Positions 28,595 through 61,396 of a stretch of 64,000 nt of DNA are shown here, in pieces (the first letter of the stretch is position 1; every line of letters starts with the position of its first letter). The stretch covers positions 12,896,001 to 12,960,000 of the forward strand of contig NC_083426.1 of NCBI RefSeq assembly GCF_020745735.1. The letters are read 5' to 3'. The stretch is from Hemiscyllium ocellatum. Taxonomy: Eukaryota. A program made the position numbers and the translations under genes. The notes beneath the pieces are model-generated. The model did not search any database. It was not told where the DNA came from and saw nothing but the letters and a program-made list of their open reading frames with translations.

Positions 28595-28634
28595 ATGGAT
28601 TTTACATTCCATCTCTTCATGCTGTCCTTCTCGG
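28595..28634 (+). CDS. Gene A exon 1, signal peptide (MDFTFHLFMLSFS+G)
   Basis: ATG with A at -3, 13 mostly hydrophobic codons +1 nt, then GTAAGT; joined leader ends in VSGA, a good cleavage site; parallels gene B leader. Confidence 0.8.
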
Positions 28635-31600
28635 GTAAGTAACACAAATTGCATTAAACTTCGTTGGGGAAATTAAATTGTGTGCATTAGACAAAGTTTT
28701 ATAGAAACATGAATTGTTAGAGGAGGTCTCTTCCAGTCCTACTGTCTTATTATGTCTGGAATCCTTGCTATCCAATCATCCTGCAGCAAATCCAGTCTGC
28801 AGAACATCCATTAGTTCTGGCTCAGTTGTGGAACAGTAGCCTTGGCATCCAGAATATTATGACTCAAGTCCCACTCTAGGAGACTTCAGCACCGAAACCA
28901 TGGTAACGCACCAGATTAGAACTGAAGTCTGAGACCCCCACCTCCCTTCTCCAGAATGTGAAAGAGGTTTCACGTTGTTAAGTTGAAGGAGATCAGAGGA
29001 ATGATCTGCCCAATCTTTCTTCTTCAATCACCCACAAACAAATCATTCAATTGTTAGTTTAGGGAGTTTACTGACCACAAATTGGTCAAGGTATTCCTTT
29101 CTCACATTGTGATAGTGATGGTAACTACAGCATATTTTATTGATTCTAAAGCACTCCGAAGTCATTTAAGATGCTATGTAAATGCAGCCTTTCCTTATCT
29201 TTTTATCATTAGCCTAACAGCTCTTGGCAGTCTCCTCGGATTCCAGGCAGCTCACCTCCCCATTTCAGCCCCAGAGCAGGGATTCAGCCTCTGTCATCCA
29301 GTTCAACACTATGATTGATTGACTGAGATGTAAAAAATCAAGGCTGACCATTACCCTGTGAGTGCCACTCGTCTGCAGCATGTCCAATTGAGCATTCAGT
29401 CCTCTTATCCATCGCTTGCCTTTCCACACACTATCAATTGCAATAACTTGATTTTAAAGAGCTGCTGGGGGAAATGAGAGAGGTTTCACACCATGTATTA
29501 TGCTTGGGTGGTTTGATCTGCCTTGAGCTGCACTGTGAATTATGAAGGAAACTTCTTCCATTTAGGATGAAGCAAAGCAGGTTTGCGTTGAGCAGGTGCA
29601 GTAAAAAGGAAAATCACATTCTTGCAAAAACCCAGCTACAACCTGATTAAGTCTGCTCTGTCTTCCTGACATTGAAGCCGTCAAACGTTTTGTGGTTTTC
29701 TGGTAAAACTGATGTGGTAGCAGGCGAGAGCAGTAGCTCTCTATATCGGTTAGCTTGATCCTTCAAACAGGATGAGTGCTCTGTCACATCGTGTTGATGT
29801 ATGTTGCAGCTCTTTCTAATTCTTTTCTACAAATTGGAATGAGAGGGTTTTTTTTATAAACTCACTGCCATCTGATTACTATCTGATTGGCAGGGTTAAG
29901 CTTTCCAATTTTCTGTGGCAACTTCCTGGATGGAAGTTTGTAAAGGTCTAAATAACATGGGCTATGACAAAATTAGGTGATAATCACTAAAAGACCCATC
30001 TCAAAGTCGAAATCATTTCACTCCTCGAACATCTGACTGGCCAACTATTTGCTCTCAACAAAGGAAGAAGGAATCCATCGTGTTACACGGTACAGGGCCA
30101 ACTAGACCCAACCAAAATACACTAATCAGATATATGTACAGACCTCTCTGATCAACCCTTTTATGTATGTCATTGATCATGCAAGAATTTTGTTCCTTGC
30201 CACAAGTTCTGATTTACTTTAAACATTAAGGGCATAAGGACTATCTCATAATGCAGTAGTTGTTGTGATTCTGTTCGCCGAGCTGGGAATTCGTGTAGCA
30301 GACGTTTCGTCCCCTATCTAGGTGACATCCTCAGTGCTTGGGAGCCTCCTGTGAAGTGTTTCTGTGATGTTTCCTCCGGCATTTATAGTGGTTTGTCTCT
30401 GCCGCTTCCAGTTGTCAGTTCCAGCTGTCCGCTGCAGTGGTCGGTATATTGGGTCCAGATCAATGTGTTTGTTGATAGAATCTGTGGATGAGTGCCATGC
30501 CTCTAGGAATTCCCTGGCTGTTCTCTGTTTGGCTTGTCCTATAATAGTAGTGTTGTCCCAGTCGAACTCATGCTGCTTGTCATCCACGTGTGTAGCTACT
30601 AAGGATAGCTGGTTGTGTCGTTTCATGGCTAGTTAGTGTTCATGGATGCGGACCGTTAGCTGTCTTCCTGTTTGTCCTATGTAGTGTTTTGTGCAGTCCT
30701 TGCATGGGATTTTGTACACTACATTGGTTTTGCTCATGCTGGGTATCGGGTCCTTTGTCCTGGTGAGTTGTTGTCTGAGAGTGGCTGTTGGTTTGTGTGC
30801 TGTTATGAGTCCTAGTGGTCGTAGTAGTCTGGCTGTCAGTTCGGAAATATTCTTGATGTATGGTAATAGGAAAAGTCAAACAGAGAACAGCCAGGGAATT
30901 CCTAGAGGTATGGCAATCATCCACAGATTCTATCAACAAACACATCGACCTGGACCCAATATACCGGCCACTGCAGCGGACAGCTGGAACTGACAACTGG
31001 AACGGCAGATTCAAACCACTACAAATGGTGGAGGAAACATCACAGAAGTGCTTCACAGGAGGCTCCCAAGCACTGAGGATGTCACCTAGACAGGGGACAA
31101 AACGTCTGCAACACAAATTCCCAGCTCGGCGAACAGAACCACAGCAATGAGCACCCGAGCTACAAATCTTCTCACAAACTTTGAACAGTAGTTGTGTTTT
31201 GGAAAATTCTGAAAATCCAGTTGAATTGATATTTCAGGCAGGATATGGGTCAGCTCTACTCCTGATATGCAAGTGCAATTCTTTGGACTTTAGATAGACA
31301 CACGTGTCAACAATTGAACAGATGTTGATGTTAATGTGCTCCTTATGAATCATCTTATCTGAACACTGGGAGCTGCTCCAATCTTCTATGTTTCTGTCTG
31401 CTGGGGGTATTTCCCTCTCAGTTCATTCCTGTTAAGCCTGATCTACATTTTGAAACTATTGCCATCCAACAGAAATAGTTTTCCTTCACCTAATCCCTTT
31501 ACAATATTGACAAATTGAAGGATTGCCAGCTGTGTATAATCTCTCCCTGTAACAAAGACCTTGGAGCTGATAGTCCCAAGGGGAGCAAGGTTCCAGTTCA

Positions 31601-34600
31601 GAATGTTTTCTACACAACTTCTCAAGATGCGCTGGGCATCTTGAAAATGCCATTAGAATGATCAAAGTAGGAGTTTAAGTTGAGGAGTCTCAATGTCCAT
31701 TTTTAATTGTTAAGTATTCGAGATACATTCTACAGCTGTGGGCAGCACAGTGGCACAGTGGTTAGCACTGCTGCCTCACAGCATGTGAGACTCGGGTTCA
31801 ATTCCCGCCTCAGGCGACTGTCTGTGTGGAGTTTACACATTCTCCCCGTGTCTGTGTGAGCACCCTCTGGGTGCTCCGGTTTCCTCCCACAGTCCAAAAA
31901 TGTGCAGGTTAGGTGAATTGGCCATGCCAAATTGCCCATAGTGTCAGGTGAAGGGATAAACGTAGGGGAATGGGTCTGGATAGGTTGCACTTCGGCTGGT
32001 TGGTATGGAGTTGTTGGACCCAAGGGCCTGTTTCCACACTGTAAGTAATCTAATCTAATTACTCATCTGTTGCAGTGATTTACTTTATTGAGTTTTAATG
32101 TATATTGTGTCATAATTTCTCACTGAACAGTTTCAGGCGCCATCCTAACTGGACCTGCTGTCATAAATGGATCAGTGGGACAATCCATTATCATCAGGTG
32201 TAAATACAACAAACATTACAGCAGTTCTCCAAAGTACTGGTGCAAAGGTGACAACAGGGAAGACTGCGTAATTTTAGTCAAAACCCAACATTCGAGGAAG
32301 ACAAATTCTGATGGAAGAATAACCATAGAAACTGACAATGACGCAGGAGAATTCTTAGTCATGATGGACCGCTTAACAAAGAATGACCAAGGCATGTACT
32401 GGTGTGGAATTGCAAGGTTTTTGTGGGACTTGTTGAGTCCTGTGGAACTTAATGTTATTGAAGGTAGGATGTTAAAAATTTTATTATTGTGCTAATTTTC
32501 CAGCTGGATATTTGAGTTTGTTGTGTGGTATATAACATGTTTTTCAAACATTTCCACTTTTCAGTGGGCAGTTGGAAACCTGGTAAATAATGAAAGAATA
32601 CACTGAGGTAAGTCTAATGGGGTGTCTCTATCTCCACCCAGTGGAGTATGGGATACCCACCCAGCACAAGAACAGCAGTCTTGCAGCAATCTAGCAGCTG
32701 ATTGGCCATTCATTGGGTGCATCCAGGTTCTTGGTCCAAAGAACCATGGAATCCCTGACCCCTGATGAGGAGTCATCAAGACTCAAAACATTAGCTTGCT
32801 GTCTCTCCCTGGATGCTGCCTGACCCACTGTGATCTCCAGCATTTGTTATTTTCACCCTGGCCTCTGATTGGCTAGAGTTCTCCGGGGGAAAGCTTCCTG
32901 TCTCTGAGGCATGGAAGTCCCACCTTCAGGTTCTAAGTTTGCTTGCTCAGCTGATAGGTTTGTTCTCAGATGGTTTGTCACCATGCCAGGTAGCATCATC
33001 AGAGAGCCTCTGGTGAAGTGCTGGTGTTCTGTTCCGCTAGTGGTTTGTGTGCCTTGATCTGTTGTGGTGGGTGATATCACTTCCAGTTCTTTTTCTGAGA
33101 GGTTGGTAAATGGGGTCCAAATTAATGTGTTTGTTAATGGAGTTCCCATTTAAATGCCAGGCCACGAGGAATTCCCATGCGTGTCTCTGTTTAGCCTGTC
33201 TTAAGATGAATGTGTTGTCCCAGTCGAAGTGATGTCCCTCCTCGTGTGTGTGTAAGGATACTAGTGATAGCCGGTCATGCCTTTTGGTGGCAAATTGGTG
33301 TTGTTATATCCTGGTGGCTAGTTTCCTGCCTGCCTGTCGGGTGTAGTGTTTACTGCAGTCCTTGCAGGGTATTTTGTAAATGGCATTCACTTTGTTGGTT
33401 GTTGGCATAGGGTCTTTCAGGTTCATCACCTAAGTCCCACTTCAGTTTGTGGCTTCTCACCTGGACCACACCAGTAGGAGAGGGTGTTGGGTATGGGTAT
33501 ATGGGTGATCATGGTGAGTTGAGAGGGTGAAACTGGGGCAGGGATTGGGGTCAAACTCAGGGGCAGAGAACACCACACCCAACATTGTGGCCACCCTCCC
33601 CACCTTGCCGCAGCTACAACAAGGAAATATGTCAGACTGAACGTTTGGCAAGAGCCTTCCCATGCACTTATCAAATCCCAGCAGCTGTAGGATGACGTGC
33701 CTAAGGTTTGTTTCATATTCATTCATGGCATGGGAACGTCACTGACTGGGCTGGCTCCTCAGACGCTGCCTGACCGGTTGTGCTTTTCCAGCACCACACT
33801 CTCAATTCTGATCTGCTGCCCTCACTTTCTCCATTTATTGATGGTCCCTAATTGCCCTGAGGGGAGTTAAGAGTCAACCACATTGCTGTGGGTCTGGAGT
33901 CATGTGTCCTTTCCTGAAGAACATTAGTGACTGAGATGGGTTTTCCTTGATAATTAGCAATGGTTTCACAGTCATCATGAAACTCTTACTTCCAGTTTCT
34001 TTTATTGAATTCAAATTCCACCAGCTGTCATTTAGGATTTGAACCCAGATCTCCAGACATTATTTGGCTCTCTGGATTAATAGTCTAATAGACAATCAAC
34101 AAAACCACTCAGCCATCAACTCCCTGTGGGCCATGAATTGCCTACATGGGCATCAATTGGTCTATCTATGGGCCAGGAGAAAGTGAGGTCTGCAGATGCT
34201 GGAGATCAGAGCTGAAAATGTGTTGCTGGAAAAGCGCAGCAGGTCAGGCAGCATCCAAGGAGCAGGACAATCGACGTTTCGGGCATAAGCCCTTCTTCAG
34301 GAATGAGAAGGGCCTATGCCCGAAACGTCGAATCTCCTGCTCCTTGGATGCTGCCTGACCTGCTGCGCTTTTCCAGCAACACATTTTCAGCTAGCTATGG
34401 GCCAACAGAGTTTGTAAAAATGTAGAGGGCAGCACTGAGTAGGTTGTTGGCAGATGTGGGATTTGATGCCCCTTACTTTTAAATCTGTCAGCATTAAAAT
34501 CAACCCACAATGCCTCTTTTTCTTGCTAATTCTATCTTAGCAAAGTTTCTTCATTTTTTATCTGCAAATCTCTGATTGCTTAGACCGTTGTGTAATACAA

Positions 34601-37600
34601 TTTTATGGGGGTATAATCTAATATATTTACACCGTTTTTAACAGATCCCAAGGTATCTCTTTCAGGCTCGCCAGCAGAAGAGGAAGTTCTGAGGTAAATT
34701 TTGTACTTACCTAAACCTAGTCATTCTGAACTTCTGTCTGCAGCTTAATGATCACACGAAAAACATGAGACCACAGGAATATGTGAGGATCATGCCATGG
34801 CTGAAATGTATTAGCTCTGAGGAATGATTGGGGAGGCATTGATCATTTCATTGGAACAAAGAAGGCTGAAGAATGATTGAATTGCGATGCATAAAATCAC
34901 ATGGGGCTTGGGCCGAGTCAATTGGACAGACAAACCTTCCTTAGCAGAGTACACAATAACCAGGGGGTCTAGGATACAGTATTTAATAGAAGATTGAAAG
35001 GGAGAATGGGGCATGTGGGATAAGTGTCTGAAAGTCACTGCTTAAAGTGCTAGTTGAGCCAAAAACCCCCTCTGGTTTTGGAATAGTCAGAGATGGAAGA
35101 TGGGTTGGGAGACCTTATTGGTAACTAATGCACAGATGCAGTGAAATTGTTCAGAAAACTTACACTGGAGATGGATTGATATTCACCTTCTGCGACCCTC
35201 CCTGATGCTGAGCTCAGGGTGGAGACGTGGGCTGGATATGAGGAACCTGCCTTTTTGCTTTGGAAATAGCCTGGCCAAACTGATTAGCATTCAGTGAGGC
35301 CCAAGTGAACATCATAATGAAACTCATCTAATCACCCCCAATGACTGACTACAAGCCCCTCCTCACCTAACCCCCAGTCCTGACTATCCCTGAAACCCTC
35401 CCATATTGCCCACTCACCTGCCTCAAAAACCTCACATATTCACAAATCTGTTCAATTACTCACCCATTCATGAACTCATTCACTTACAGAAAAACTTGAC
35501 TTTTAAAAGCTTAACTCAATGGGGCATATACTATTGTAAAACAAAAGGGTCATGTCCACAAGATTCCATCTCTTCTTGTACCTGACATTCTCCACTTGAG
35601 AGGCTTTAATATCCCTTTGGAACTTCAACTGGGTTTCAAAGACATGGCCAATAAACTATAATACGGTCAGGCCACAGACCTCTCCATGGGCAGTGCCAAT
35701 CTACTCTACTGACCAGATAAATCTGGACCATTGCATTTAAAAAATACTTGGACATGCAGTTAAGGTATTTTAATCCAAAGGGCTACAAACCAGTATAAAG
35801 AAGTTGGAATTAAGCTGGATTACTCTCTCTTGGCTGGCAAAAGAATTCTGGGCTGAATGGACTCCTTTTGTCCTATTTCTTCATGTTTCTAATGAGCAAC
35901 TTCCCTCTGCAATAAAAACAGAAAATGCGAGAGAAACCTAGCAGATCTGGCAACACCTGTGGAGAGAGAAAAAGAGTTAACATTTTGAGTTTGATATGAC
36001 TCTCCTTCAGAATTCTCTGTAAACTTTATTTCAGATTCCCACCATCCACAGTACTTTGCTTTCACTTGAAAGTCCTTATGCAATTTAGGAGACTTAAACT
36101 GATCAGCGTGAAGGTCAATGATTGGGATGGGATTTTATACAGACATATTTGCATTATTGAACTGGCAGCTAGCTTTACATCTTTCCTGTTGAAACTTAGG
36201 AAAGTCACTTATATTAATTGGTCACTTCATGCACTCTGATGCCCAATAGACCAGCCGACAGATGCAGATACATCAACTACATCTTTGTACTTCACTATCT
36301 TTTAGCCGTGCAAAATCATGAAATCATTCCAGGTCGTATAATGGATCTCTGAGTTTTAGTTAAAGAGTTGCACACAAATGCGCATGGAATTCTCAATGTC
36401 TTGTCATAGCTTTAGTAGATGAGAGAAATCCCAACTGAAATGGTGCAAACAGCCATGACAGTGAGAGATCAGCTTACCATGGATTAAAATTTCACATCAG
36501 CCATTCATTACTCAGAATGATGGAGAGCAATGAAAACCTAATCTGCCCAGCAGTTGGACAATATTTAGTCCTGATGAAATGTTACTCCATTACATTTCTC
36601 AAAAAAACTAAAACGATCAAGTGCAATATTAGTTTTACAATCTCCACTGCACCACTCACAACACCAATCTTAACATTGGCCAGGTATATGTGGCAGTGTT
36701 CCATCTCATCCTAAGTGTTTCTTGCCCAGACTTAAGTTAAAATTATTCCCATCTTTTCACTAGCAATATGCACTTCATTTAAAACCCACCAACTAACATC
36801 ACCCATTTACAGTATTGGCTAAAATCAAAACATGAAAATACATTTTAATAAGAACAAAAATGAAGATCCTTTATATAACTGCATCTGTGCTGAAAACAGT
36901 TAAATTATCATCCCAGATTGCACATCTGTTACTGCTAATGGACCTTTTTCCTCAGCTTATATTTCATTTTCAATTGTAGCAAGTGTTTTCACAGCAATGT
37001 GTGTTGGTAGAAGCTAATTCATGTGTTATGCTGTCATTGGAGGATTTGAGCTATAGAGAGAGGTTGAATAGGCTGGGGCTATTTCCCTGGAGTGTCGGAG
37101 ACTGAGGGGTGACTTACAGAGGTTTATAAAATCATGAAAGGCATGGATAGGGTAAATAGACAAAGTCTTTTCCCTTGCAGGGGGGAGTCCAGAACTAGAG
37201 GGCATAGGTTTAGGGTGAGAGGGGAAAGATATAAAAGAGAACTAAGGGGCAACTTTTTCACACAGAGGGTAGTATTTGTCTGGAGTGAGCTGCCAGAGGA
37301 AGTGGTGGAGGCTGGTACAATTACAGCATTTAAAAGACAAGTGGATGGGCATATGAATAGGAAGGGTTTGGAGGGATATAGGCCGGGTACTGGCAGGTGG
37401 GACTAGTTTGGGTTGGGATATCTGGTCAGCATGGATGAGTTGGACCGAAGGGTCTGTTTCGATGCCGTACATCTCTATGACTTTATTTACCACTGTATCA
37501 CTCTTGGCACTTGGTAACTCTGGGATTTGTGTCTTTCCAACATGGTGCTTGTCGTCTGCTCACTTTACTGGTTAGAAAGCCATGAGTCAAGGTGTGTAAA

Positions 37601-37841
37601 AATGTTACATGCTGTAGGAGAACAAAAGCCAAAAAGTATTTTTGATTATCTGCAAGTGTAGCCAAATAACTCACAGATCCAAGCTCGCTCTATGGATCCT
37701 GAAATCTATTTTGATAGAAATAATTTTGTCTTCTATCTACCTAGGCAAAATTCTATGTGTTATTTTATCTGGAGCATTTTACGTTGGTTTTTCTTTGCCA
37801 TTCTCCTCATCTGGGCCATTTTAATCAAACTGAAAATATAG
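28595..37841 (+). CDS. Gene A: CD300/pIgR/CMRF35-like single-V activating-type receptor, 4 coding exons (28595-28634, 32131-32463, 34645-34693, 37745-37841), 172 aa
   Basis: Exons join in frame (phases 1,1,2) with GT-AG sites: MDFTFHLFMLSFS-V-SGAILTGP..V domain..NVIE-D-PKVSLSGSPAEEEVL-R-QNSMCYFIWSILRWFFFAILLIWAILIKLKI*. Confidence 0.85.
30255..31190 (-). mobile_element. Penelope-like element 3' end (GIY-YIG) with inverted partial copy
   Basis: Minus strand VVYKIPCKDCTKHYIGQTGRQL..AREFLEAWH; ~30870-31190 is an inverted duplicate; intact hammerhead core on minus 30298-30337. Confidence 0.9.
31740..32059 (+). mobile_element. HE1-type SINE ending ~70 nt before gene A V exon
   Basis: Similar to 5268-5575 including TAATC tail. 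Confidence 0.85.
32131..32463 (+). CDS. Gene A exon 2, Ig V domain of CD300/pIgR type
   Basis: C..KYWCKG..C..DGRITI..D.GMYWCGI; 4 Cys; acceptor CAG at 32128-32130 (alternative in-frame AG at 32135-32136), donor GTAGGA at 32464; phase 1-1. Confidence 0.95.
32880..33420 (-). mobile_element. Degenerate Penelope-like GIY-YIG fragment
   Basis: Nucleotide similarity to 30340-30750 endonuclease region. Confidence 0.65.
34210..34392. mobile_element. Near-perfect inverted pair of Penelope pseudo-LTR ends (~88-nt arms)
   Basis: 34210-34297 is the reverse complement of 34307-34392; hammerhead intact on minus strand only. Confidence 0.85.
34645..34693 (+). CDS. Gene A exon 3, stalk (DPKVSLSGSPAEEEVL)
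   Basis: ttttaacag acceptor, GTAAAT donor, open frame, phase 1-2 linking V to TM exon. Confidence 0.7.
37040..37482 (+). mobile_element. CR1 LINE 3' fragment (other 3' relics at 1-310, 16513-16570, 20860-21200, 52370-52960, 58495-59280, 61975-62390)
   Basis: SRTRGHRFRVRGERYKRELRGNFFTQRVV..W..LPEEVVEAGT. Confidence 0.85.
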
Positions 37842-37855
37842 ATGATGAAATACTG
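37745..37855 (+). CDS. Gene A exon 4, transmembrane exon with Arg; stop TAG 37839-37841; donor after 37855
   Basis: Pyrimidine tract + TAG acceptor; YFIWSILRWFFFAILLIWAILIKLKI*; GTAAGT donor 14 nt after stop; clear paralog at 61310. Confidence 0.88.
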
Positions 37856-39309
37856 GTAAGTTGTTGACTTGAATAATTTCTGTGTACTTTAGCTTAAGAA
37901 AAACATTGGAAGAATTCTCTATGCTCACTATCAATAGTTTAAAAAAAATAGTGTAACCATCAAAATATCACATTTCTGAAATCAGCATTCACTAATTTCA
38001 TCTTCCTCAGAGAATATTACCAGAAAAGATATTGATAGATAATGGTAGATACAGTCGGCATTCATTTCATTAACCTTCTAAATATAAAGTACTTTACATT
38101 CAGAATATTAAATGGATGAATATTTTACACAAGTAGAATGATAATTCCAAAACATACCTATTAAGGTGTCCCAAAATACAATGGAGGGATTTCCTGCTTT
38201 AATATAAAGTGAGTGGACAGTTGGTTAAAATATCTGAAGTTGACAATGCGTTATGAAAATGAGGGCAATCCATAAATGTCTGCTTTAACTTCAGCCCAAT
38301 TTCCTTTCCACGGAGCACCCCCGGGAATGAGGAGGGTTTTAACTTTATTACGCAAAGACCTCACTATCACTATGTGATTCTGAATGTAAATGCATTTACA
38401 AAGGTGTCCTGAGTTTTTGTGAAACTTACCAGGAAAAATAAGCTGTGAGGACAATGAAATTTGAGGGACTGAACATCTAGTCAGATTAGAAATTCTTAAA
38501 ATACTGAAATCTTGCTGGTGTGAATACCTTTTATTTGAAGTCTTGTTCTGAGAATGTGTTTTTACTGTGTTAGTAGGAAGGGGTCATGAAGTGAGACTGG
38601 TGAACATGGATGTGGTGTGAGAGTTAAGGGGTTGTGCAGGCTAGGGAGATTGAACATGGGAAATGCAAGGTATGGGGTGAGTCTGGTGGGATACACTTCC
38701 AATGGTCAGTGTGGACTGGTTGGGCTGAATGGCCTGCTTCCATGTTGTGGGGACTGTATGATCTTCTACCATCTAAAGGGACCCATCAATAGGTCTTTAA
38801 ACCACTTGCAGGAGGAATGGTTCCATGTCTTCTGACTTCCTCAGTGACCTGCAACCACCTCGCGATTGCAGGCTTTACTCCAATGTCACTGGCAAAGTGC
38901 TCAATAACCTTAATCTATCAAAGTGATGGGCTAAAGTGAGAGGCCATTCAGCCCACTGCCAACAATCTTTCCACTTTGCCCTCCCACTGTCAGTATTGAA
39001 AAGCTGAAAAGGAAGTTTTATTTCTAAAATCTGCCTTTAACCCAGTCTCAAAAGAACAGAAGCATAATGGACTCAAAATGTTAACCCCCCACACACACTT
39101 TCTGTGGATGCTGTCCACACCTGTTGAGTTTCTCCCACAATTTCTGTTTTTGTTTTTTTCAGAACTCCAGTATCCACGGTTCTTCATTTTATCTCAGCAA
39201 AGCAGAACCTCAATAAGATTAATTAATATGATTATGAGAAAGAGAAGAAAGGGATTCTCATTCTCCAGCATGTTGATTCCTGTATCCCAGGAAACAAAAC
39301 AGCATTAAG

Positions 39310-40210: not shown

Positions 40211-40397
40211 AGGGGAATACGCATGTAGTTTGAATTGTGTTACACTCAAAATTGATCTTTTCACTGAATATATTCTCTCAATTCAATACCTTCTTCTTTT
40301 AACTATGTTGAAACCTAATGTCTGCAAGAACAAATTGACTTTGAACAATTGCTTTCTATATGATAATATTTGAAACACATTTTGCTTTTATTTCCAG

Positions 40398-40956: not shown

Positions 40957-41189
40957 GACGGATAGATTAATAATGGATGTTTGTCAAAGCATCAATTCTT
41001 CATCCATAGCGTTGATAACTGAAATGCCATTTTTCCATTTAATGTATGTGTACCTGCAATGTATATTATGGACTAGAAATTCTTTGGGGTTCTCTCGAGT
41101 TTTTGTTCCAATATCCTGTCAAAGTTATGCAGGAAATTTGGTAGAACCACCATAGAATTCCATGAAATAATCATCTATCAGCACTTGTT

Positions 41190-44114: not shown

Positions 44115-44154
44115 ATGGGTTTCACCTTTCTATTGTCTATTGTTTTACTATCAG
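44115..44154 (+). CDS. Gene B exon 1, signal peptide (MGFTFLLSIVLLS+G)
   Basis: 40 coding nt then GTAAGA; same length, M-x-FTF start and upstream CACTTAAA motif as gene A leader. Confidence 0.8.
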
Positions 44155-47100: not shown

Positions 47101-50100
47101 TACCTGTTGTCTCACCCTCAAATGATTCAAGCAGTTTGTAAATTCATCATGAGCTTGAAGTACTAGTATGAAGACATTGTCCTCTCTGTTTCTCTTTCTT
47201 TGTTAAGCACCCTCTTTCAAAAGAGGTGGGTTTGTTGAGGCTCCAATTAGCTTTAACCATTTGATCGATTTGTTTCTTATCTAATGTTTTGTCAATGTTT
47301 TCTCCCTATTCAACAGTGGGGTACTTGATTGTACCAGGTGAGCTAGGGCCTATCGATTGTCCACACACAGCTCAACTCCTTTCTCTCTCTTAGTTCTTAT
47401 AGTGCCACAACTTACAGACAGAATCAACTACATGGTTTGTCCTCTACCTGAAGGGCGGTAGTACTAAACATTCTTCCCCATTTAGGGACCAGATAGTCAA
47501 TAGCAGAGCAGTGCAGCACCCTGTTCCCAACAACAATTGTTGAAGATGGATTTTAAAAGAAATCTGAGTCCTATGTTCAGCTGCACAAATCAGTCTTTAT
47601 TTGGAGTTCCTTGTCACTCAGTCTGGGAAAGGTTCCTTGGACAATCCACCTTTCCCAATTAAGTTAAAAATCATGCAATAGCAGGTTCTGGTCCGACAGG
47701 TTTATTTGGAAATATGAAGGAGTGACACTCCGAAAGTTTGTACCGTACTTCCAAATAGACCTGTTGAACTATAACCTGGAGTTGTGTGATTTTTAACTTT
47801 GTCCACACCAGTCCAACACTGGCCACTCCACATCATGTTTCCCAGTAAAGTACAGGATATTCATACGTTCCACACTATAATGGTTACTTGCAACATTGGC
47901 ATCAGTGCTTTCCAGAGTTTAGATTAGAGTGGTGCTGGAAAAGTGCAGCAGGTCAGGCAGCATCCGAGGAGCAGGAGAATCAATGTTTCGGGCAAAAGCC
48001 CTTCATCAGGAATGGAGGTAGGGAGCCTCCAGGGTGGAGAGAGAACTGGAGGGGAAGGGGGGGAGGGGGGGTTGCTGGGGAGAAGGTAGCAAAGAGTACA
48101 ATAGGTGAATGGGGGTGGGAATGGAGGTGATAAGTCAGAGGGGAGGGCGGAGTGGATAGGTGGGAAGGGAGATTAGCAGGTAGGACAGGTCATGAGGACA
48201 GTGCTGAGCTGGAAGGTTGGAACAGGGGTAAGGTGGGGGGAGGGGAAATGAGGAAACTGGTCCTGACCCACCTGCCTATCTCCCTTCCTACCTATCTGCT
48301 CCACCATCCCCTCTGACCTCACCCCCATCCCCACCCCCATTCACCTATTGTACACTTTGCTACCTTCTCCCCAGCTCCACTATCCCTCACCACCTCCACA
48401 CCGCACCCCCACAACCTCCACCTCCCCACTTAACTCTTTACCCTGGGGGCTCCCTGCCTCCATTCTTGATGAAGGACTTTTGCCCTTAACGTCGATTTTC
48501 CTGATCCTCAAATGCTGCCCAATCTGCTGTGCTTTTCCAGCACCACTCTAATCTAAACTCTGGTTTCCAGCATCTGCAGTCCTCACTTCTGCCTATCACT
48601 GCTTTCCACCTACTGTCTGACCTTTATGCCTCTGCGCAATCATTTGTCAGCTCCATCAGCACAGTGGCTCAGTGGTTAACAATGCTGTCTCACAGCACCA
48701 CAGACCCAGGTTTGATTCCAGCCTCAGGTGATTGTCTGTGTAGAGTTTGCACATTGTCTGCATGGGTTTCCTTTGGGTGCTCCAGTTTCCTCCCACAATC
48801 CAAAGATGTGCAGTTTAGATGTATTGGCCATGCTAAATTGCCCTATAGTGTCCAGGGATGTGCAGGCCAGATGGATTAGCATTGGGAAGTGCAGGATGGG
48901 GTGGGTCTAGGTGGGATGCCTTTCGGAGGGTCGGTGTGGACCTGTAGGGATTCTCTGATACTCAGTGTGTGCTATTTGTTACCTTGTGTATTTTCCTGAG
49001 GTCATCATTCCTGGCAATTTCAACTCAATGCCAGTGGGATTAATTCTATTGAATTCAAAGACTCCGGGCACTGCAGAACCATGTTCAGTGAAGTTGGGAC
49101 CAGCCCAAGGACCCTTAACATGGAGGTGGGAAGAAAGTACACACAGACATTCTCAAGGATTTAAGCTAATAGAAGACAGCAATAACTTGAGAAATAATTG
49201 AAAGAAAATAAATAAATAACTACTCTAATATGGGAAACTGAAATTATTTTCTGATAGACTTTTATAGAGTCATAGAGTTGTACTGCATAGAAAAGACCCT
49301 TCGGTCCAACCTGTCCAGGCCGACCAGATATCTCAACCCAATCTAGTCCCACCTGCCGGCCCATATCCATCCAAACCCTTCAATTCATATACCCATTCAA
49401 ATGTCTTTTAAATGTTGTAATTACACCAGCCTCCACCCATCCTCTGGCAGCTCATTCCACACATGTACCACCCTCAGTGTGAGAAAGTTGCCCCTTAGGT
49501 CTCTTTTATATCTTTCCCTTCTCACCCTAAACCTATGCCCTCTAGTTCTGGGCTCCCCCACCCCAGGGAAAAGACTTTGTCTATTTATCCTATCCATGCC
49601 CCTCATGATTTTGTAAACCTCTATAAGGTCACCCCTCAACTTCCAACGCTCCAGAGAAAACAGCACCAGCCTGTTCAGCCAATCTCTACAGCTCAAATCC
49701 TCCAACCCTAGCAACATCCTTGTAAATCTTTTCTGAACCCTTTCAAGTTTCACAATATCTTTCTGATAGGAAGGAGACCAGAATTACACACAATATTCCA
49801 ACAGTGGCCTAACCAATGTCCTGTACAGCCCCAACATGATGTCACAACTCATGTACTCAATACTCTGACCAATAAAAAAAAGCACACCAACTGCCTTCTT
49901 CATTATCCTATCTACCTGTGACTCCACTTTCAAGGAGCTATGAACCAACACTCCAAGGTCTCTTTGCTCAGCAACACTCCCTAGGACCTTACCATTAAGT
50001 GTATAAATCCTGCTAAGATTTGCTTTCCCAAAATGCAGCACCTCACATTTATCTGAAATAAACTCCATCTGCCACTTATTAGACCATTGGCCCATCTGGT

Positions 50101-53100
50101 CCAGATCCTGTTGTAATCTGAGGTAACCCTCTTCACTTACACTACACCTCAAATTTTGGGATCATCTTCAAACTTACTAACTGTACCTCTTATGCTCACA
50201 TTCAAATCATTTATATAAATAATGAAAAGTTGTGGACCTAGCAACGATCCTTGTGGCACTCCACTGGTCACAGGCCTCCAGTCTGAAAAATAACCCTCCA
50301 CCACCACCCTCTGTCTTCCACCTTTGAGCCAGTTCTGTCTCCAAATGGCTAATTCTTCTTTTATTCCGTGAGATCTAACCTTGCTAACCAGTCTCCCATG
50401 GGGAACCTTGTCAAACTCCTTACTGAAGTCCATATAGATCACATCTACTGCTCTGCCCTCATCAATCCTCTTTGTTACTTCTTCAAACGACTCAATCAAG
50501 TTTGTGAGACATGATTTCCCACATACAAAGCCATGTTGACTATCCCTAATCAGTCCTTGCCTTTCCAAATACATGTACATCCTGTCCCTCAGGATTCCCT
50601 CCAACAACTTGCCCACCACCAACGCCAGGCTCACTGGTCTATAGTTCTCTGGCTAGTCCTATCCACCCTTCTTAAACAGTGGCACCACGTTTGCCAACCA
50701 CTTGTCCTCTGGCATCTCACCTGTGACTATCAATGATACAAAATCAGCAAGAGGCCCAGCAATCACTTCTCTAGCTTCCCACAGAGTTCCAGGGTACACC
50801 TGATCAGATCCTGGGGATTTATCCACCTTTATGCATTTCAAGACACCCAGCACTTCCTCCTCTGTAATCTGGACATCTTGCAAGGTGTCACCATCTACTT
50901 TCCTACATTCTACACCCTCCAGATTCTTTTCCACACTAAAATTATTGATAATCATTTAATTATTAAAATAAAAGTCTGAGGTCTATACAGCGAGCACAGA
51001 AACAAAAGTCCAAAATTGCACCACTTTACAATGTGCATTGTGAAGACAACAGGAAAATGGCACTGAGATCCTGATGTAATCTCATTCTTTCACCCCGAAC
51101 AGCAGCACCCTTTACCAAGCCAACTTGTCCTGTATCGAGGTGCTAAACTCTCAATCCCAGCTCTAGAACGTGTCATTTATGGACAGGATGCCAGATTCCC
51201 AAAGCAACTGTTCCATTCACAAGTGTACCTTGGCAAGATGTTTCCACAAGGACGGAGAAATGGTTTGGAGATGTCTTCAAAGCTTCCTGAAGAAATCAAA
51301 CGTAACCATGTCACATGGGAGTTCCTGGTTTGTGACCAACCAAAATGGAGAAGGCTTGTTTCAAAAAAGCAACTAATTTGTTCAGCAACTTTGGAAACTG
51401 AAGCTGTGAAGTATTAGAGGAAGTGCACAAACTTCCAAACAAAGCCTTCCATAATCCTTCAATCAGCACATGACAGAGCCGGCAGATTCACACTGGAGAG
51501 GTTCAGAACCCATTGAATCAGAGCGGAAGCAAGCCTTTGGGAACAGCAAACTGCCTTCAGAAAAGATAATATTCAGATCTCTGATATTTTTAAAAGCCCG
51601 ACAGTTTGCGCTTCCTTGCACTCACCTTGTTCTGTGATGCCCAAGTGCATCTCATGTCGTATCTTGCTTTAGTAACAAATCTTCAAATAGCAACAACTGT
51701 CAGAGGAAGTCTGTTTCAAGGGTAGAGACAGATGTGGTATTGAACCACACAAGCAGATTTACTGTGTGTTTCTTGTACTCAATAACAGGAAATCTGAACA
51801 TGACTCAGGAGGAACAAACTGCTCTAAAAACACACCGCAAATTCCCATCAGTTAAACTCTGGTTTGGACCCCACATTACAGGCAAGTTCTCTGGGTGCAG
51901 TAGTTTACAACTTCATCTGTCCTAGCTCTAAGTCTCTTCCCTCCCCAGAACCAACTCACTCATTCTAGAGCAATATCTTCTCCCTCTCTTCCACAAACTT
52001 CTGCATCCGTTCTGTCAGTTTCATTCCTTTCAGTTGACTTCCATTCTGCTCCACTCTTTGCCTGAAGTCTCCAGTGCTGCTACCACACACCTTCTCACCT
52101 AAAAGAGAGGCAGTGTGACAGCCATGAATATTACATGGCTGGGTGATGGGCAACACAACAATGTGAACCATTATTTCTCAGACTGGAGGAAGGCACATGA
52201 TGCAACTCTCCACTGGTCACCAACAGGATGACTGCTTTTCTTGATGCACGGTAACGATCCAGACTGGGATTGCCAAGATACAATTTCAACGTTTACAGAT
52301 GTGATAAGGCTTAGAGCCATGTGGGGGATAGGAAATAATTTCAAGAAAGCAAACATGATATGGCGGAATGGGTAGACAGGTATGTTATGAAATATAAAAA
52401 TTGAAAAATGTGAAGTGCTTTGCTTTGGTAAGAAAAACGAGGAGAGGCAATGTAAGTTAAAGGCTACAATCCATAGGCGGCAGAGAACCTGGTGTTCTCA
52501 AACCACAAATTGTTGTCTACATTAGGGAAGCTTGGGGAAGTGATTAATGGAGTGTATAACTTTATAAATAAATGCATAGTGTACTAGAGTACATAAACTG
52601 TGGTGAACTTTTTACAGACACTGAATTAGTCACAACTGGAGCATCATGACCAATTCTGGATTCCTCACTTTTGGAAGGGTGTGACAACATCAGGGATGAT
52701 GTGGAAATAATTAATAGGAATGGTTCCTATGATGAGTGTTTATAGTTGGGGAAGCAAGTGATGTTTTCTTTTGAGAAGTGAAGATTAAGGAGACATTATT
52801 TAGAGATGTACAAAATCTAGAGTGGTCAGTTGTACAAGGTAATGATTCTGAGTGGGTGAAATTGTTAATTCCATGCAATCTCATGATGTTGCACATTCTT
52901 GGGTACAGAATGGAAACATTGTGCTTGAGATCACAATGTAATCTGAATATCATTCCAGTTTCCCAACACTTATTGAACAAAGTTAAAAATCACACAAGAC
53001 CAGGTTATAGTCCAACAGGTTTATTTGGAAGCACTAGCTTTCAGAACACTGCTCCTTCATCAGGTGGTTTTGGAGCAGGATCATAAGACACAGAAATCAT

Positions 53101-56100: not shown

Positions 56101-59100
56101 AAGTAGACAAGTCCCTGGGCCAGATGGATTTTATCCAAGGATTCTCTGGGAGGCTAGGGAGGAGATAGGAAAGCCTTTGGCTTTGATATTTGAGTCATCA
56201 TTGTCTACAGGTTTAGTACCAGAGGATTGGAGGATTGCAAATATTGTGCCTTTATTCAAGAAGATCAGTAGTGATGACCCAGGTAATTATAGACCAGTGA
56301 GTCTTACTTCTGTTGTTGGAAAGGTTTTGGAAAGGATTATAAGAGATAAGATGTATAATCATCTAACCAAGCAATGATTTGATTTCAAATAGTCAACATG
56401 ATTTTGTCAAGGGCAGGTGTGTTTCACAAACCTCATAGAGTTTTTTGAGAAGGTGACCAAGCATGAGGGTAGGGCAGTTGATGTAGTAAACATAGACTTC
56501 AATAAAACCTTTGATAAAGTTCCACATAGTAGGCTGTTGGAGAAAATGCAGATGCATGGGATTAAGGATGATTTAGTAGTTTGGATTAGAAACTGGCTTT
56601 CTGAAAGGAGGCAGCATGTGGTGGTTGATGGAAAATATTCAGCCTGGAGTCCGGCTACTAGTAGTGTGCCACAAGGATCTGTTTTGGGACTGCAGTTTGT
56701 CATTTTTATAAATGACTTAGACGCAGGCATAGGTGGATGGATTAGTAAGTTCGCAGATGAAACTAAAGTCGGTGGAGTAGTGGACAGTTTGGCAGAATGT
56801 TACAGGTTGCAGGGGGACTTGGATAAATTGCAGAATTGGGCTGAGAGATGACATGGAGTTCAATGTAACTAAATGTGAGATGATTCACTTTGGGAAGAAT
56901 AACAGGAAGGCAGAGTACTGGATCAATGGAAAGATTCTTGGTAGTGTGGGAGTGCAGAGGGATCTTGGAGTCCATGTACATAGATCTTTGAAAGTTGCCA
57001 CCCAGGTGGATAGTGCTGTTAAGAAGGCATACAGTGCGTTCGGTTTCATTCATAGAGGGATTGTGTTCCAGAGCAGTAATATCATGCTTCGACTATACAA
57101 AACATTACAGTAGCCGCACTTAGAATAATGTGTATAGTTCTAGTCGCCATATTTCGAGAAGGATGTGGAAGTATTGGAAAAGGTGCAGAGGAGATTTACC
57201 AGGATGTTGTCTGGTCTGAGGGAAGGTCTTATGAGGAAAGGCTGAGTGACTTGGGCCAGTTCTCATTGGAAAGAAGAAGGCTAAGAGGGGATACTTGATA
57301 GAAACATACAAGATGATCAGAGGACTAGATAAGGTAGACAGTGAAAGTATTTTTCCTGGGATGATGACGTCAGCTTGTACGAGAGGGCATAACTACAAAT
57401 TGAGGGGTGATAGATTAAAGACAGATATTAGAGGCAGGTTCTTTTCTCAGAGAGTGGTAAGGGCGTGGAATGCCCTACCTGCCAATATAGTTAACTCAGC
57501 CACATTAGGGAGATTTAAACAATCCTTAGATAAGCACATGAATGATGATAGGATAGTGTAGGGGGGACGAGCTGAGAATAGTTCACAGGTCGGCGCAACA
57601 TTGAGGGCCGAAGGGCCTGTTCTGCACTGTATTGTTCTATGTTCTATGAAAATAGTGTGGAAACCAAGAGAAGGGAATATCAATGTTAATGTCCTTTTGT
57701 TCCAATTAAGTGAAAAGTATTACATTTTAAAGTTTACTATGTTTTCACATTTACAGTTACGCACGCTTCAATTAGTGGACCAAAAGAAAAAAGTGGACAC
57801 GTGGGAGAATCTGTCACAATCCAATGCAGTTTTGACACATATTTTAGAAATTATCAGAAGTACTGGTGCAAAGGCTACTACAAGAGAAGCTGTACTGTTT
57901 TGATACAAACTAATGGCCCTGAAAAGAAAAGTCATGATGGCAGAATTAGAATTACAGCTGATAATACAAAAGGACAACTTACAGTACATATGGACCAGAC
58001 AACGAAAAGTGATAAAGGATGGTACTGGTGTGGAATAGATAGACCTAACTTTCTGAATCCATTAACTCCCATACAACTTAAAGTTCTTAAAGGTAAGGCA
58101 CAATATATGCTAACTGGTCTATTTATTTTTCAATAGTATATTTTTGTTCAATAATAAGTTGAAATAAGATCCTGACTTTTCAGTAATGCATTAAAATTGT
58201 AATATTGTGAACTAGAGTAATAGCTAAAAGCAATCTGCTGCTCTTTGGTTTTTTTTCTATTTAATTAGCATTTCATGTTTATCTCAGTAAACACAGCTAA
58301 TTCCTCTTCACAGTTTAGTATAGAGCTATAACATGAGGCTAATGCACTTTCAAATAATAACTTTCCACATAATTTTGAACAGGTGAAAAGATAATTCCCA
58401 ATGACAAGGAAAGACAAAAGTAAATGTCAAGTGGATTTGAACAGGTATACTTGAAGTATTTGTTTTATTTCTGCACCATTGGAATAATGAAAGGTATCAT
58501 GGAGTCATAGAGATCTAAAGCTCAGAAAAAGGCCCTTCAGCCCATCATTTCTGCAGTGATCAAAAACAAATACCTAACTATTCCAATCCCATTTTTCAGC
58601 AACTGCTCCACAGCCCTCCATGTCTTGACACCATAAGTGCACACCCAAATACTTCTTAAATGTTACAAGAGTTTCCTTCTTCCACCCTTACAGTAGCGAA
58701 TTCCAGATTCCCACCACCATCTAGATGAGAAAGCTTTCCTAACATCTCCTCTAAACCTACTGTCCCTTCTCTTAAATCCATGTCCCCTAGTCCCAAGGAG
58801 AAAGGTCCCTTTCTGTGTACTCTATCAATGCTTCACATAACATTATACATCCCAATCATGTCTCCCTTAGCCTCAAACAAAAACAACCCTGGTCTGTCCA
58901 ATTTCTCTTCATAACTGACTCTTCAGCCCATGCAACATCATGGGAAATCTCCATTGCACCATCTTCAGTGCAATCATATCCCTCCTAACATTTTATACAT
59001 TTCCAATATAACCTCCCTGCTCTTATAATGTACGCTTTGACTAATAAACTTAAGTTTCACATAGGCCTTTTAAACTACTTTATCCACCTGACCTGACACC

Positions 59101-61382
59101 TTAAGAGTCTGATGGATATGCATACCAAGGTCCTTCTGATCCTCAGTTTTGCCCTGGGTCCTACTGGACATCCTGTATTCTCTTGTCCTGTTTGCTCTGC
59201 CAAGTGTGTCACCTCATTCATTTGTGGATGGAATTCCATTTGCCATTCAGTAGCCCATCTGTATCTTCCCATATTTCTCCTCATGACAAAGGAACCTCAA
59301 TTATCTGGCATTAAATTATCTGAATTTTGGATTATCCACACCAATCAACCACACCGGCCTGTGGCCCACATTTCAACTCCCGCTCCCACTCTGCCGAGGA
59401 CATGGAGGTCCTGGGCCGTTCCCTCACCGCCAGACGCCTGGAGTAAGAACGCTTCATCTTCTGCCTCGGAACACTTCAACCCCATGGTATCAATGTGTGC
59501 TTCAATAGTTTCCTCATTTTCTCTTCCCCCACCTCACCCTAGTTCCAAACTTCCAGCTCAGCACTGTCCCCATGACTTGTCCTACCTGCCTATCTCCTTT
59601 TCCACCTATCCACTCCACCTTCCTCCTTGACCTATCACCTTCATCCCCTCCCCCACTCACCTATTGTACTCCATGCTACTTTGTCCCCACCCCCACCCTC
59701 CTCTAGCTTATCTCTCCACCCTTCAGGCTCTCTGCCTTTATTGCTGATGAAGGGCTTTTGCCCGAAACGTCGATTTTACTGCTCCTCGGATGCTGCCTGA
59801 GCTGCTGTGCTCTTCCAGCACCACTAATCCAGAATCTACTGTATAGTATCCTATTGTCACACAGGAGATTCCTGGTTATTTACCTGCCAGAATCCCAGTG
59901 ACTGCTTTCTCCGAGTAAGGAATGTTGATGATGTAGAATGAATGTCACTTCTTGCATCAACACCAACTTAACATTGTGCTTGAAAGTTTGGGGTCAAGTT
60001 CGTGGGGGTTGGTTCTATTTCAGCATGAAACACTGTTTTCACACGTGAATGGGATTCCTTGTGGCATAATGTTGGGGAGGAAATTACACTAATTGATTTC
60101 ACAATCCACTTGTTCTGTATATTTCCAATGTTTGCACTTTGTATGATCATTATAACCAATAAATGGTGATCCCGGGTCTAAATTTTGAAATATTAGTATC
60201 CTTCCACTACAAGAGTAAACAAAAATTACTGGATCCAAGATAACTGAGGATTTAGAAAGCCAATGAGATTAAATTGTAAGTGCTAGCTCAGTGTGAGGGA
60301 AAGTTCACCTGAAGGGAACTGAGACTGAGTGAGTATATTTAGAAATTTCTTTCTGAGTAAGAGCTCAAACAGTAAACCTTTTCCAAGTTCAGTCTGAGAG
60401 TAAGAGTCAGAATCTGACCTGGCACCAACAACCTGGAACTAACAGATATTAAGGGAGTTACCTGAATAAATGTTCTGAAGAAGTGTTAACTGATTCGATT
60501 AGATTAGATTAGATTACTTACAGTGTGGAAACAGGCCCTTCGGCCCAACAAGTCCACACTGACCCGCCGAAGCGCAACCCACCCATACCCCTACATTTAC
60601 CCCTTATCTAACACTACGGGCAATTTAGCATGGCCAATTCACCTGACCCGCACATCTTTGGACTGTGGGAGGAAACCAGAGCACCCAGAGGAAACCCACG
60701 CAGACACGGGGAGAGCATGCAAACTCCACACAGACAGTCACCTGAGGCGGGAATTCAGTCTCTCTTCATACATCAGTCCTGACATGAGTCCATGTGGTAG
60801 TGCATTTTGAGAAGATTTGTAGCTCAGGTTGAGGTTTTAGATGTATGTTTGCTCGCTGAGCTGGAAGGTTCATTTCCAGAAATTTTGTCACCCTAACATC
60901 TTCAGTCCAAGTCGTTCTTTTTGTCTGCCCAGGCTCAAAGTTAAGGATACAACGACTGGGCTGGAATCAAACATAATGAGTCAAAGAGATGTGGAGATGT
61001 ACAGCATGGAAACAGATCCTTCGGTCCAACACATCCATGCCAACCAGATATCATGCAGTGGGAACGTTAGTGGTCCATGTCGGTACCAATGACATAGATA
61101 GAATCAGGAAGAAGGTTTTGATGAGGGAACATGAGATGTTGGGTGCTAAACTAAATTGCAGAACTTTAGGAGTAATAATCTCTGGCTTACTGCCTGAGCC
61201 ACATGTAAGGTGTCAAACCATCCATGTTTGCTCCTAATTCATACATTTGCAATAAACCATTTTGTCTTTCACCTACTTATGGGCAAAATAATTCTCTGCA
61301 CTCTTTTAGATGGAGCACTTTACGTTGGATATTCTTTGTTATTCTCCTCCTTTGGGCCATTTTTATCCAAGTGAAGATATAA
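44115..61382 (+). CDS. Gene B: paralogous CD300/pIgR-like single-V activating-type receptor, exons 44115-44154, 57757-58092, 58383-58419, 61310-61382, 161 aa
   Basis: MGFTFLLSIVLLS-V-THASISGP..V domain..KVLK-G-EKIIPNDKERQ-K-WSTLRWIFFVILLLWAIFIQVKI*; all GT-AG, frame preserved; stalk exon least certain. Confidence 0.75.
46640..46835. repeat. TC/TCTA-rich low-complexity repeat
   Basis: Direct inspection. Confidence 0.9.
47900..48605. mobile_element. Penelope pseudo-LTR inverted repeat with purine-rich and pyrimidine-rich arms
   Basis: 47915-48260 mirrors 48270-48600; degenerate hammerhead cores at both ends. Confidence 0.75.
48657..48960 (+). mobile_element. HE1-type SINE (further copies 60498-60755 minus, 61490-61800 plus)
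   Basis: Family similarity. Confidence 0.8.
49265..50940 (-). mobile_element. CR1 LINE, 5'-truncated, RT domain disrupted
   Basis: QHGFVCGKSCLTNL, YMDFSKEFDKVPH, GVPQGSLLGPQLFIIYINDL across ORFs 49421-50955; CR1 3' tail near 49265. Confidence 0.95.
51100..51420 (+). mobile_element. RTE-clade LINE C-terminal fragment (second relic ~54540-54800)
   Basis: RMPDS.FPKQLF..and WEFLVCDQPKWR motifs typical of RTE C-termini. Confidence 0.6.
53630..54400 (-). mobile_element. Rex1/Babar-like LINE RT fragment
   Basis: Minus strand LSLNVGKPK and decayed FYRCTIESIL-type C-terminal RT. Confidence 0.6.
54870..57647 (+). mobile_element. CR1 LINE (partial APE endonuclease + RT + 3' tail), disrupted
   Basis: FYRPPKS, VIMEDFNFPNI, NYRPVSLTSVVGK, SVPQGSVLG, KFADET; TTCTATG tail repeats ~57633-57647. 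Confidence 0.95.
57757..58092 (+). CDS. Gene B exon 2, Ig V domain of CD300/pIgR type
   Basis: QCSF..KYWCKG..C..DGRIRI..D.GWYWCGI; ttacag acceptor, GTAAGG donor; phase 1-1. Confidence 0.95.
58383..58419 (+). CDS. Gene B exon 3, candidate stalk (GEKIIPNDKERQ)
   Basis: ttttgaacag acceptor; AA|GTAAAT donor (same hexamer as gene A stalk donor); the only phase 1-2 solution I found. Confidence 0.5.
59330..59830 (+). mobile_element. Penelope-like 3' end with hammerhead core at 59744-59771
   Basis: GIY-YIG C-terminal remnant then CTGATGA-A-GGGC TTTT GCCC-GAAACGTC. Confidence 0.8.
61065..61205 (+). mobile_element. CR1 ORF1 esterase (SGNH) fragment
   Basis: VVHVGTNDI..LGAKL..VIISGLLPEP. Confidence 0.7.
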
Positions 61383-61396
61383 GTGAAGGAAAGTTG
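61310..61396 (+). CDS. Gene B exon 4, transmembrane exon with Arg; stop TAA 61380-61382; donor after 61396
   Basis: WSTLRWIFFVILLLWAIFIQVKI*, 16/23 identical to gene A TM; acceptor ctcttttAG 61308-61309; GTAAGT donor 14 nt after stop. Confidence 0.8.

Follow-up and report, generated by a model that had tools for sequence, protein, structure and literature searches.

The activating members of the mammalian CD300 group (CD300b/c/d/e; CMRF35-like molecules, or CLMs) contain one V-set immunoglobulin (Ig) domain with an extra C-C' disulfide and a WC(K/R)G motif, followed by a stalk, a transmembrane (TM) segment with a charged residue, and a very short tail; relatives bearing ITIMs (immunoreceptor tyrosine-based inhibitory motifs) adjoin them. 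The charged residue is mostly a lysine in the center of the TM segment, or a glutamate. A second point of reference is provided by the paired receptors KIR2DL/2DS, PIR-A/B, and SIRPα/β, in which an inhibitory ectodomain is joined to an activating TM segment and the ectodomains are kept alike by conversion. In cartilaginous fish, the CD300/pIgR-like family was first described as MDIR, a multigene family of activating and inhibitory skate receptors that resemble CD300, TREM, FCAR, and pIgR (Cannon et al. 2006, cited in PMC3031540). This kind of receptor is thus known in three ways: from mammalian CD300, from skate MDIR, and from paired receptors shaped by exon shuffling and gene conversion. Here, we describe two adjacent receptor genes of the same kind, designated gene 1 and gene 2, in a 64,000-nucleotide stretch of DNA from the epaulette shark Hemiscyllium ocellatum (NCBI RefSeq assembly GCF_020745735.1, contig NC_083426.1, positions 12,896,001 to 12,960,000 of the forward strand), which is referred to as the window.

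The best explanation for the locus, to which we assign a probability of about 0.65, is that gene 1 and gene 2 encode adjacent CD300 (CMRF35-like)/pIgR-like receptors, that gene 2 is a chimeric partner of a neighboring ITIM gene, and that both proteins couple to an adaptor through an arginine in the TM segment. Each gene would encode a type I membrane protein with one V-set domain that contains the additional C-C' disulfide, a short stalk, an arginine that enters the TM segment at a depth of approximately 5-8 residues below its outer face, and a tail of four residues. The resemblance drawn here is to the CD300 group. In the shark proteins, the charge is provided by an arginine that sits within the outer third of the TM segment and forms part of the motif W-x-x-L-R-W. 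What the locus adds to the described systems is an old single-V lineage with an arginine-bearing TM segment, a chimera in carpet sharks with a damaged splice acceptor, and a broad distribution of the TM motif. The features of the two genes are as follows (coordinates refer to the window).

28595-28634, + strand: gene 1 exon 1 (40 nt) with the ATG and the leader MDFTFHLFMLSFS; donor GTAAGT
32131-32463, + strand: gene 1 exon 2 (phase 1), V-set domain; its four cysteines form a B-F pair and a C-C' pair
34645-34693, + strand: gene 1 exon 3, stalk DPKVSLSGSPAEEEVL, placed via orthologue proteins
37745-37855, + strand: gene 1 exon 4, QNSMCYFIWSILRWFFFAILLIWAILIKLKI; stop at 37839-37841, conserved GT donor 14 nt later at 37856
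44115-44154, + strand: gene 2 exon 1 (40 nt) with the ATG and the leader MGFTFLLSIVLLS; donor GTAAGA; collinear with the leader of Stegostoma CLM3
57757-58092, + strand: gene 2 exon 2, V-set domain, nested within the inhibitory CLM1-like clade
58383-58419, + strand: gene 2 exon 3, stalk GEKIIPNDKERQ, of the kind that inhibitory genes have (..DKERLR)
61281-61282, + strand: lost acceptor site of the gene 2 TM exon, now GG; gene 1 and the two Stegostoma genes have AG here
61310-61396, + strand: gene 2 exon 4 (putative), read from the in-frame AG at 61308-61309, (K)WSTLRWIFFVILLLWAIFIQVKI; stop at 61380-61382, GT donor at 61397
63388-63430, + strand: probable start of the gene 2 terminal exon, matched by homology to the final exon of Stegostoma CLM3

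A six-frame motif scan of the window found exactly two V exons with the pattern KYWCKG...YWCGI and two TM exons with the pattern LRW-x-FF followed by a stop, all on the + strand; searching the window with 206 family proteins by tblastn revealed no further exons of the family. Exon borders were read from the sequence, except that the short stalk exons were placed with the aid of orthologue proteins, and the internal borders of both models are all AG/GT. A search for stalk exons by similarity between the two genes gave no match because their stalks are not homologous. The spliced product of gene 1 is 172 amino acids in length; the gene 2 model is an open frame of 161 amino acids. Both V exons match the Pfam V-set domain (E = 1e-16 for gene 1 and 9e-16 for gene 2) and are 42% identical to each other. 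The motif scan, translation, and border reading thereby confirmed, on the + strand, the two genes that the initial annotation had described, with a 40-nt leader, a V domain with four cysteines, a short stalk, and a W-S-x-L-R-W TM segment, and the stop that it placed shortly past the hydrophobic stretch leaves a tail of four residues in each gene. Its description of two complete genes of four exons holds for the number of coding exons and is refined in two respects. The GT donor located 14 nt past the stop is conserved in both genes, which indicates that the TM exon is internal in each of them, and the TM-exon acceptor of gene 2 is mutated. The last coding exon of isoform X2 of the zebra shark (Stegostoma) orthologue aligns at approximately 63388 in the window, providing gene 2 with a further exon by homology; no terminal exon of gene 1 was found by similarity to that of gene 2.

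The spliced product of gene 1 is identical, letter for letter, to XP_060701213.1 (P0169), the "CMRF35-like molecule 7" of Hemiscyllium ocellatum, and gene 1 is therefore already part of the public annotation; the public gene span of 9247 bp corresponds to 28595-37841 of the window. Orthologues of gene 1 that share its leader, V domain, stalk, F-I-W-S-I-L-R-W helix, and KLKI or KLKM end were found in several sharks and one ray: Chiloscyllium plagiosum, C. punctatum, Stegostoma tigrinum, Heterodontus francisci, Mustelus asterias, and the electric ray Narcine bancroftii. NCBI names this one gene CLM2, CLM5, or CLM7 depending on the species, so the CLM numbers carry no orthology. Judged by sequence, gene 1 is an old lineage that has been retained in sharks and rays. 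The Narcine bancroftii orthologue has two isoforms (P0031 and P0155), one of which ends in ..TVKM while the other continues for 26 residues; the region around the conserved stop and the following donor thus appears to be used alternatively. The initial annotation had named existing annotation or literature on such a family as grounds for setting its proposal aside. Both exist, in the CMRF35-like molecule 7 entry for gene 1 and in the account of the MDIR family in PMC3031540; the receptor kind is real, it is already known, and a pair such as gene 1 and gene 2 is to be expected in the family described. A literature search on shark CMRF35-like molecules found no paper that treats them as such. 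MDIRs are of the same kind, being a multigene family of activating and inhibitory receptors of cartilaginous fish with CD300/pIgR/TREM-like Ig domains, and pIgR-like proteins of skates and rays share the TM motif of the two shark genes. MDIRs are described as containing one to six domains, whereas the shark genes represent a single-V form.

Assignment of the V domain to the CD300/TREM/pIgR family, which the initial annotation had proposed from the cysteines and the WCKG motif, is supported by Pfam, by matches to solved structures, and by a fold search. The sequence matches among solved structures include pIgR domains, CD300f/CLM-1 (E = 1e-16), CD300a, NKp44, TLT-1, FcμR, and TREM-1, and structures of the pIgR/CD300/TREM type outscore antibody V domains. 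An AlphaFold model of the gene 1 protein, built on an input alignment of 24 sequences, has a predicted local distance difference test score (pLDDT) of >93 in the V domain and a single long helix at residues 137-171. When this model was compared with known structures by Foldseek, the top ten matches were all chains of CD300f (mouse and human IREM-1) with TM-scores of 0.89-0.93, a root-mean-square deviation of 0.9-1.8 Å, and 29-34% identity; pIgR D1, CD300a, CD300c, and TREM2 followed. The KYWCKG motif, an instance of WC(K/R)G, is present in both genes, which have the two disulfides (B-F and C-C') of a CD300-type V domain, and the four cysteines are invariant in 24 homologues (C37, C51, C59, and C105 of P0169). 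The type I build with a charged TM segment and a short tail is likewise that of the CD300 group, and relatives with ITIM-bearing tails share the V type of gene 2. Sequence comparison and the modeled fold together place the V domain with CD300f, CD300a, and D1 of pIgR.

The closeness to pIgR raises the question of the ligand. Reviews describe cartilaginous fish as having no pIgR, no Fc receptors, and no FcRγ chain (PMC4016189, PMC13337447), and how sharks manage antibody-dependent uptake and transport is posed there as a question (PMC13337447). The two receptors might be stand-ins for the pIgR/FcμR lineage, that is, shark Fc receptors that bind IgM, IgW, or IgNAR rather than lipids. This open question in the reviews would leave room for such a role, and the best sequence matches of the V domain among solved structures are indeed pIgR domains. 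We nevertheless consider an Ig receptor very unlikely. In the fold search, the top match was to CD300f, which is a receptor for lipids. The V domains of pIgR and teleost PIGRL belong to the same superfamily, and many multi-V relatives are named pIgR-like by NCBI; however, with a single V domain and four cytoplasmic residues, the shark proteins possess neither the multi-domain, secretory-component build of pIgR, with its two to five V domains in tandem, nor its long transcytosis tail, which bears sorting signals.

Gene 2 as a whole is collinear with Stegostoma CLM3, whose isoform X1 (P0166; 164 amino acids) ends in RQNRWDILRWALFVILLLWAILIKVKI. In isoform X2 (138 amino acids), the TM exon is skipped and a stop is encountered at the start of the terminal exon. 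The leader, V domain, and stalk of gene 2 resemble those of a 253-amino acid receptor that has an uncharged TM segment and two ITIM-like motifs (VTYATV and EYSTVVF); the annotations of whale shark, sevengill, white shark, sawfish, manta, Narcine, and skates list this receptor as CLM1. No exons for an uncharged TM segment or ITIMs that could belong to gene 2 were found within the window. A V-domain tree, which the initial annotation had suggested as a check, divided the two genes: V domains of the gene 1 type form one clade that includes the ray sequence, and the gene 2 V domain lies inside the ITIM clade, within a subclade that contains only carpet sharks (Orectolobiformes; support 99/99). In this tree, the V domain of Stegostoma gene 2 groups with that of the Stegostoma ITIM gene and not with that of epaulette shark gene 2, and the V domains of the C. 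punctatum gene 2 and ITIM genes are close to one another.

At the TM exon, the affinities of gene 2 are reversed. Its TM coding part is 84% identical to that of gene 1 at the nucleotide level, and the flanks of the exon align as well. Since gene 1 and gene 2 have unrelated stalk exons, the join can be placed in the intron that precedes the TM exon. These relationships mark gene 2 as a chimera, confined to carpet sharks among the sampled species. We considered a plain tandem duplication of one gene as the source of the pair and rejected it, as the V domains are only 42% identical and fall in different clades. The simple tandem pair of the initial annotation therefore has to be replaced by a gene 2 that, according to the tree, the alignment, and the TM identity, joins the ectodomain of an inhibitory receptor to a TM segment of the gene 1 type. 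Its other proposal, that the pair is part of a diversified receptor cluster, is borne out by neighboring V-set genes in C. punctatum and Stegostoma; in both species, the order at the locus is gene 1, gene 2, ITIM gene.

Comparison of gene 2 and the ITIM gene in Stegostoma, which are located ~30 kb apart, shows how alike the two ectodomains are. Their V exons differ at 4 of 333 nucleotides (98.8% identity), and all four differences are non-synonymous and located in the F-G loop. A tract of 1.39 kb that extends from the V exon through the intron to the stalk (L003:15944-17329 in CLM3 and L001:14552-15925 in the ITIM gene) is 95.7% identical. Because the leader regions are only 76% identical, this tract bears the signature of recent gene conversion. 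When the V domains were compared with those of Stegostoma, the ratio of non-synonymous to synonymous substitution rates (dN/dS) was 0.49 in gene 1 and 0.91 in gene 2; the latter value indicates that the ectodomain shared by gene 2 and the ITIM gene changes rapidly, as is common in paired receptors.

Considered together, we propose a model in which gene 2 would have drawn its leader, V domain, and stalk from the neighboring, conserved two-ITIM receptor (CLM1-like) and its TM exon from a gene of the gene 1 type. Gene conversion would keep its ectodomain similar to that of the ITIM receptor, and the two would act as an activating/inhibitory pair with the same ligand. In this respect gene 2 parallels KIR2DL/2DS, PIR-A/B, and SIRPα/β, which belong to another Ig family and another lineage. 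It would provide a clean example of an activating partner built from an inhibitory gene, within a locus that belongs to an extensive shark cluster of the closest pIgR/CD300 relatives in which activating and inhibitory wiring is already present. A 638-amino acid "pIgR-like" RefSeq model of Stegostoma (P0016; XP_059509194.1, L001:10001-76405) looks like two fused genes. Past its ITIM tail (..EYSTVVFKK, the end of the 253-amino acid whale shark CLM1), it continues into a further signal peptide, two additional V domains, another TM segment, and one more tail.

Whether gene 2 of the epaulette shark makes a membrane protein at all is the point at which our reading is most exposed, and several observations weigh against it there. 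In a four-way alignment, gene 1 and the two Stegostoma genes show TAG|G at the acceptor of the TM exon, and gene 2 of the epaulette shark shows TGG|G; the ancestral acceptor of gene 2 has been lost through a change of AG to GG (61281-61282). A protein search revealed no H. ocellatum protein of 61-194 amino acids with the gene 2 V domain. The model of the C. punctatum gene 2 orthologue does not contain the LRW TM segment. Finally, in two possible H. ocellatum RNA runs, in which a fraction of 0.12-0.13 of the sampled words of 57500-61500 was present, the 13 words sampled across the TM exon (61280-61430) were all missing, which is a weak hint. The C. punctatum model (P0004; XP_072419284.1) spans 35 kb and contains, in place of a TM segment, 43 residues after the stalk that are unrelated to any exon of the window; it may represent a mis-splice that results from the same loss of the acceptor.

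From these observations, one can construct an alternative in which epaulette shark gene 2 has no membrane form. The TM exon would be skipped or poorly used, leaving a soluble V protein, aberrant transcripts, or an incipient pseudogene, and gene 1 would be the only working receptor with a TM arginine. The 138-amino acid isoform of the Stegostoma orthologue, which skips the TM exon, provides a precedent for such an outcome. We regard this as a real contender, although we would not bet on it. All exons of gene 2 remain open, and its TM motif, stop, and following donor are conserved. The TM exons have dN/dS values of 0.31 and 0.36, the latter for gene 2 relative to Stegostoma over only 23 codons. 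The next AG, 27 nt downstream of the lost acceptor, is in frame and is preceded by a run in which 14 of 16 nucleotides are pyrimidines; splicing to it, the one site that could rescue the exon, would yield a product that reads ...NDKERQK-WSTLRWIFFVILLLWAIFI-QVKI. This AG is part of an arginine codon, AGA, that is also present in Stegostoma, so it existed before the loss and did not arise as a repair. The RNA evidence consists of very few words from runs of unknown tissue. Taken together, we put the chance that the TM form of gene 2 is made in the epaulette shark at about even.

In the reading that we favor, gene 1 and gene 2 would signal through the arginine of the TM segment. This arginine occupies position 8 in the 22-residue hydrophobic run of gene 1 and position 5 in the 19-residue run of gene 2; in both proteins, it is followed by 14 apolar residues and a basic stop-transfer sequence, which positions it in the outer third of the TM segment. 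The tails, KLKI in gene 1 and QVKI in gene 2, contain no motif, and any signal must therefore pass through a partner. The activating-type build that the initial annotation recognized in the arginine and the short tail is thus present in both genes. Assembly of receptors with dimeric partners that contain ITAMs (immunoreceptor tyrosine-based activation motifs) centers on one basic TM residue; partners of FcRγ have an arginine within the N-terminal portion of the TM segment and partners of DAP12 a more central lysine (Feng et al. 2006, PMC1440944), which is the rule that the initial annotation had invoked. The depth and type of the shark arginine fit coupling of the FcRγ/CD3ζ type. In the proposed mechanism, the buried arginine would pair with acidic residues in the TM segments of an ITAM-bearing dimeric adaptor, which, judged by the depth and identity of the basic residue, would resemble FcRγ/CD3ζ and not DAP12, and this pairing would be needed for surface expression and signaling. 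The FcRγ-coupled receptors of mammals (FcαRI, LILRA, NKp46, GPVI, and OSCAR) likewise have an N-terminal TM arginine and a short tail without motifs, but their ectodomains are of the C2 type encoded in the LRC and the surroundings of the arginine differ, whereas the shark genes have a CD300-type V domain. The context of the arginine in mammalian FcRγ partners is NL(I/V)R(M/I).

The motif W-x-x-[LFIT]-R-W with a short tail is not confined to single-V proteins. It is present in multi-V pIgR-like proteins of stingray, skate, white shark, Mustelus, and epaulette shark, including skate P0040 and ray P0026, and in pIgR-like proteins of sturgeon and coelacanth. On two- to several-V proteins, the W-x-x-L-R-W helix with a short tail occurs in P0055 (Acipenser oxyrinchus) and P0096 (Latimeria chalumnae). 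A 650-amino acid epaulette shark model (P0119; LOC132828091) and the sturgeon protein P0055 each contain the helix twice, which suggests that each comprises two fused tandem genes. That the motif recurs in sharks, rays, sturgeon, and coelacanth speaks for a conserved contact with another protein, and the conserved helix with its arginine provides a handle for finding the shark adaptor.

The nature of that adaptor is subject to two objections. The FcRγ chain has been reported absent from cartilaginous fish (Akula et al. 2014, PMC4016189), and some relatives carry an aspartate three residues before the arginine (WDILRW and WDVLRW), which could neutralize the arginine within the helix. A literature search on shark FCER1G or DAP12 found nothing useful, and a search of the ESM Atlas with the stalk-TM part gave no usable match. 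Both proteins could accordingly be membrane receptors with a different partner or none: a DAP12/DAP10-like or shark-specific adaptor might take the place of FcRγ, or the proteins might act as non-signaling decoys in competition with the ITIM receptor for its ligand, the arginine serving in ER retention or oligomerization. The surroundings of the arginine, W-x-x-L-R-W, which are unlike those in mammalian FcRγ partners, would suit this possibility. It strikes us as somewhat unlikely, however, since the depth of the arginine and its use in place of lysine follow the FcRγ/ζ rule (PMC1440944), the helix face is so strongly conserved among sharks, rays, sturgeon, and coelacanth that a specific protein partner seems likely, and the 2014 survey of FcRγ drew on sparse shark data.

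With coupling to an FcRγ/CD3ζ-like adaptor as the preferred reading, it is tempting to extend the argument to the whole set of proteins that contain the motif. The W-x-x-L-R-W helix might be an adaptor-docking module that predates the split between cartilaginous and bony fish and is carried by pIgR/CD300-type receptors with one to four V domains, an unrecognized activating branch that couples to an FcRγ/ζ-like chain. We consider this extension unlikely on the present comparisons. If it were true, an FcRγ/ζ-like chain, and possibly Ig-binding relatives of pIgR, would exist in cartilaginous fish, contrary to the reviews.

The rest of the window is transposon debris. The remaining long open reading frames are debris of reverse transcriptase and RNase H, and no conserved non-receptor genes flank the pair within the window. 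Retroelement remains include a zf-RVT match at 833-1795 (+ strand), the RNase H-like domain of a long terminal repeat (LTR) element at 13944-14669 (+ strand), and a reverse-transcriptase fragment at 50149-50631 (- strand) that lies within the 13.6-kb first intron of gene 2. A MITE-like element of ~180 bp, which as a whole is an inverted repeat of itself (93% self-complementary), occurs many times on either strand, including within the introns of both genes (34210-34392, with copies at 13626-13732, 21668-21860, 27332-27461, 42608-42687, 47929-48014, 48461-48588, 59740-59824, and 63429-63625). Intron 1 of gene 1 contains a 283-bp inverted repeat pair (30260-30542 and 30866-31147) whose arms are 92% identical and lie 320 bp apart.

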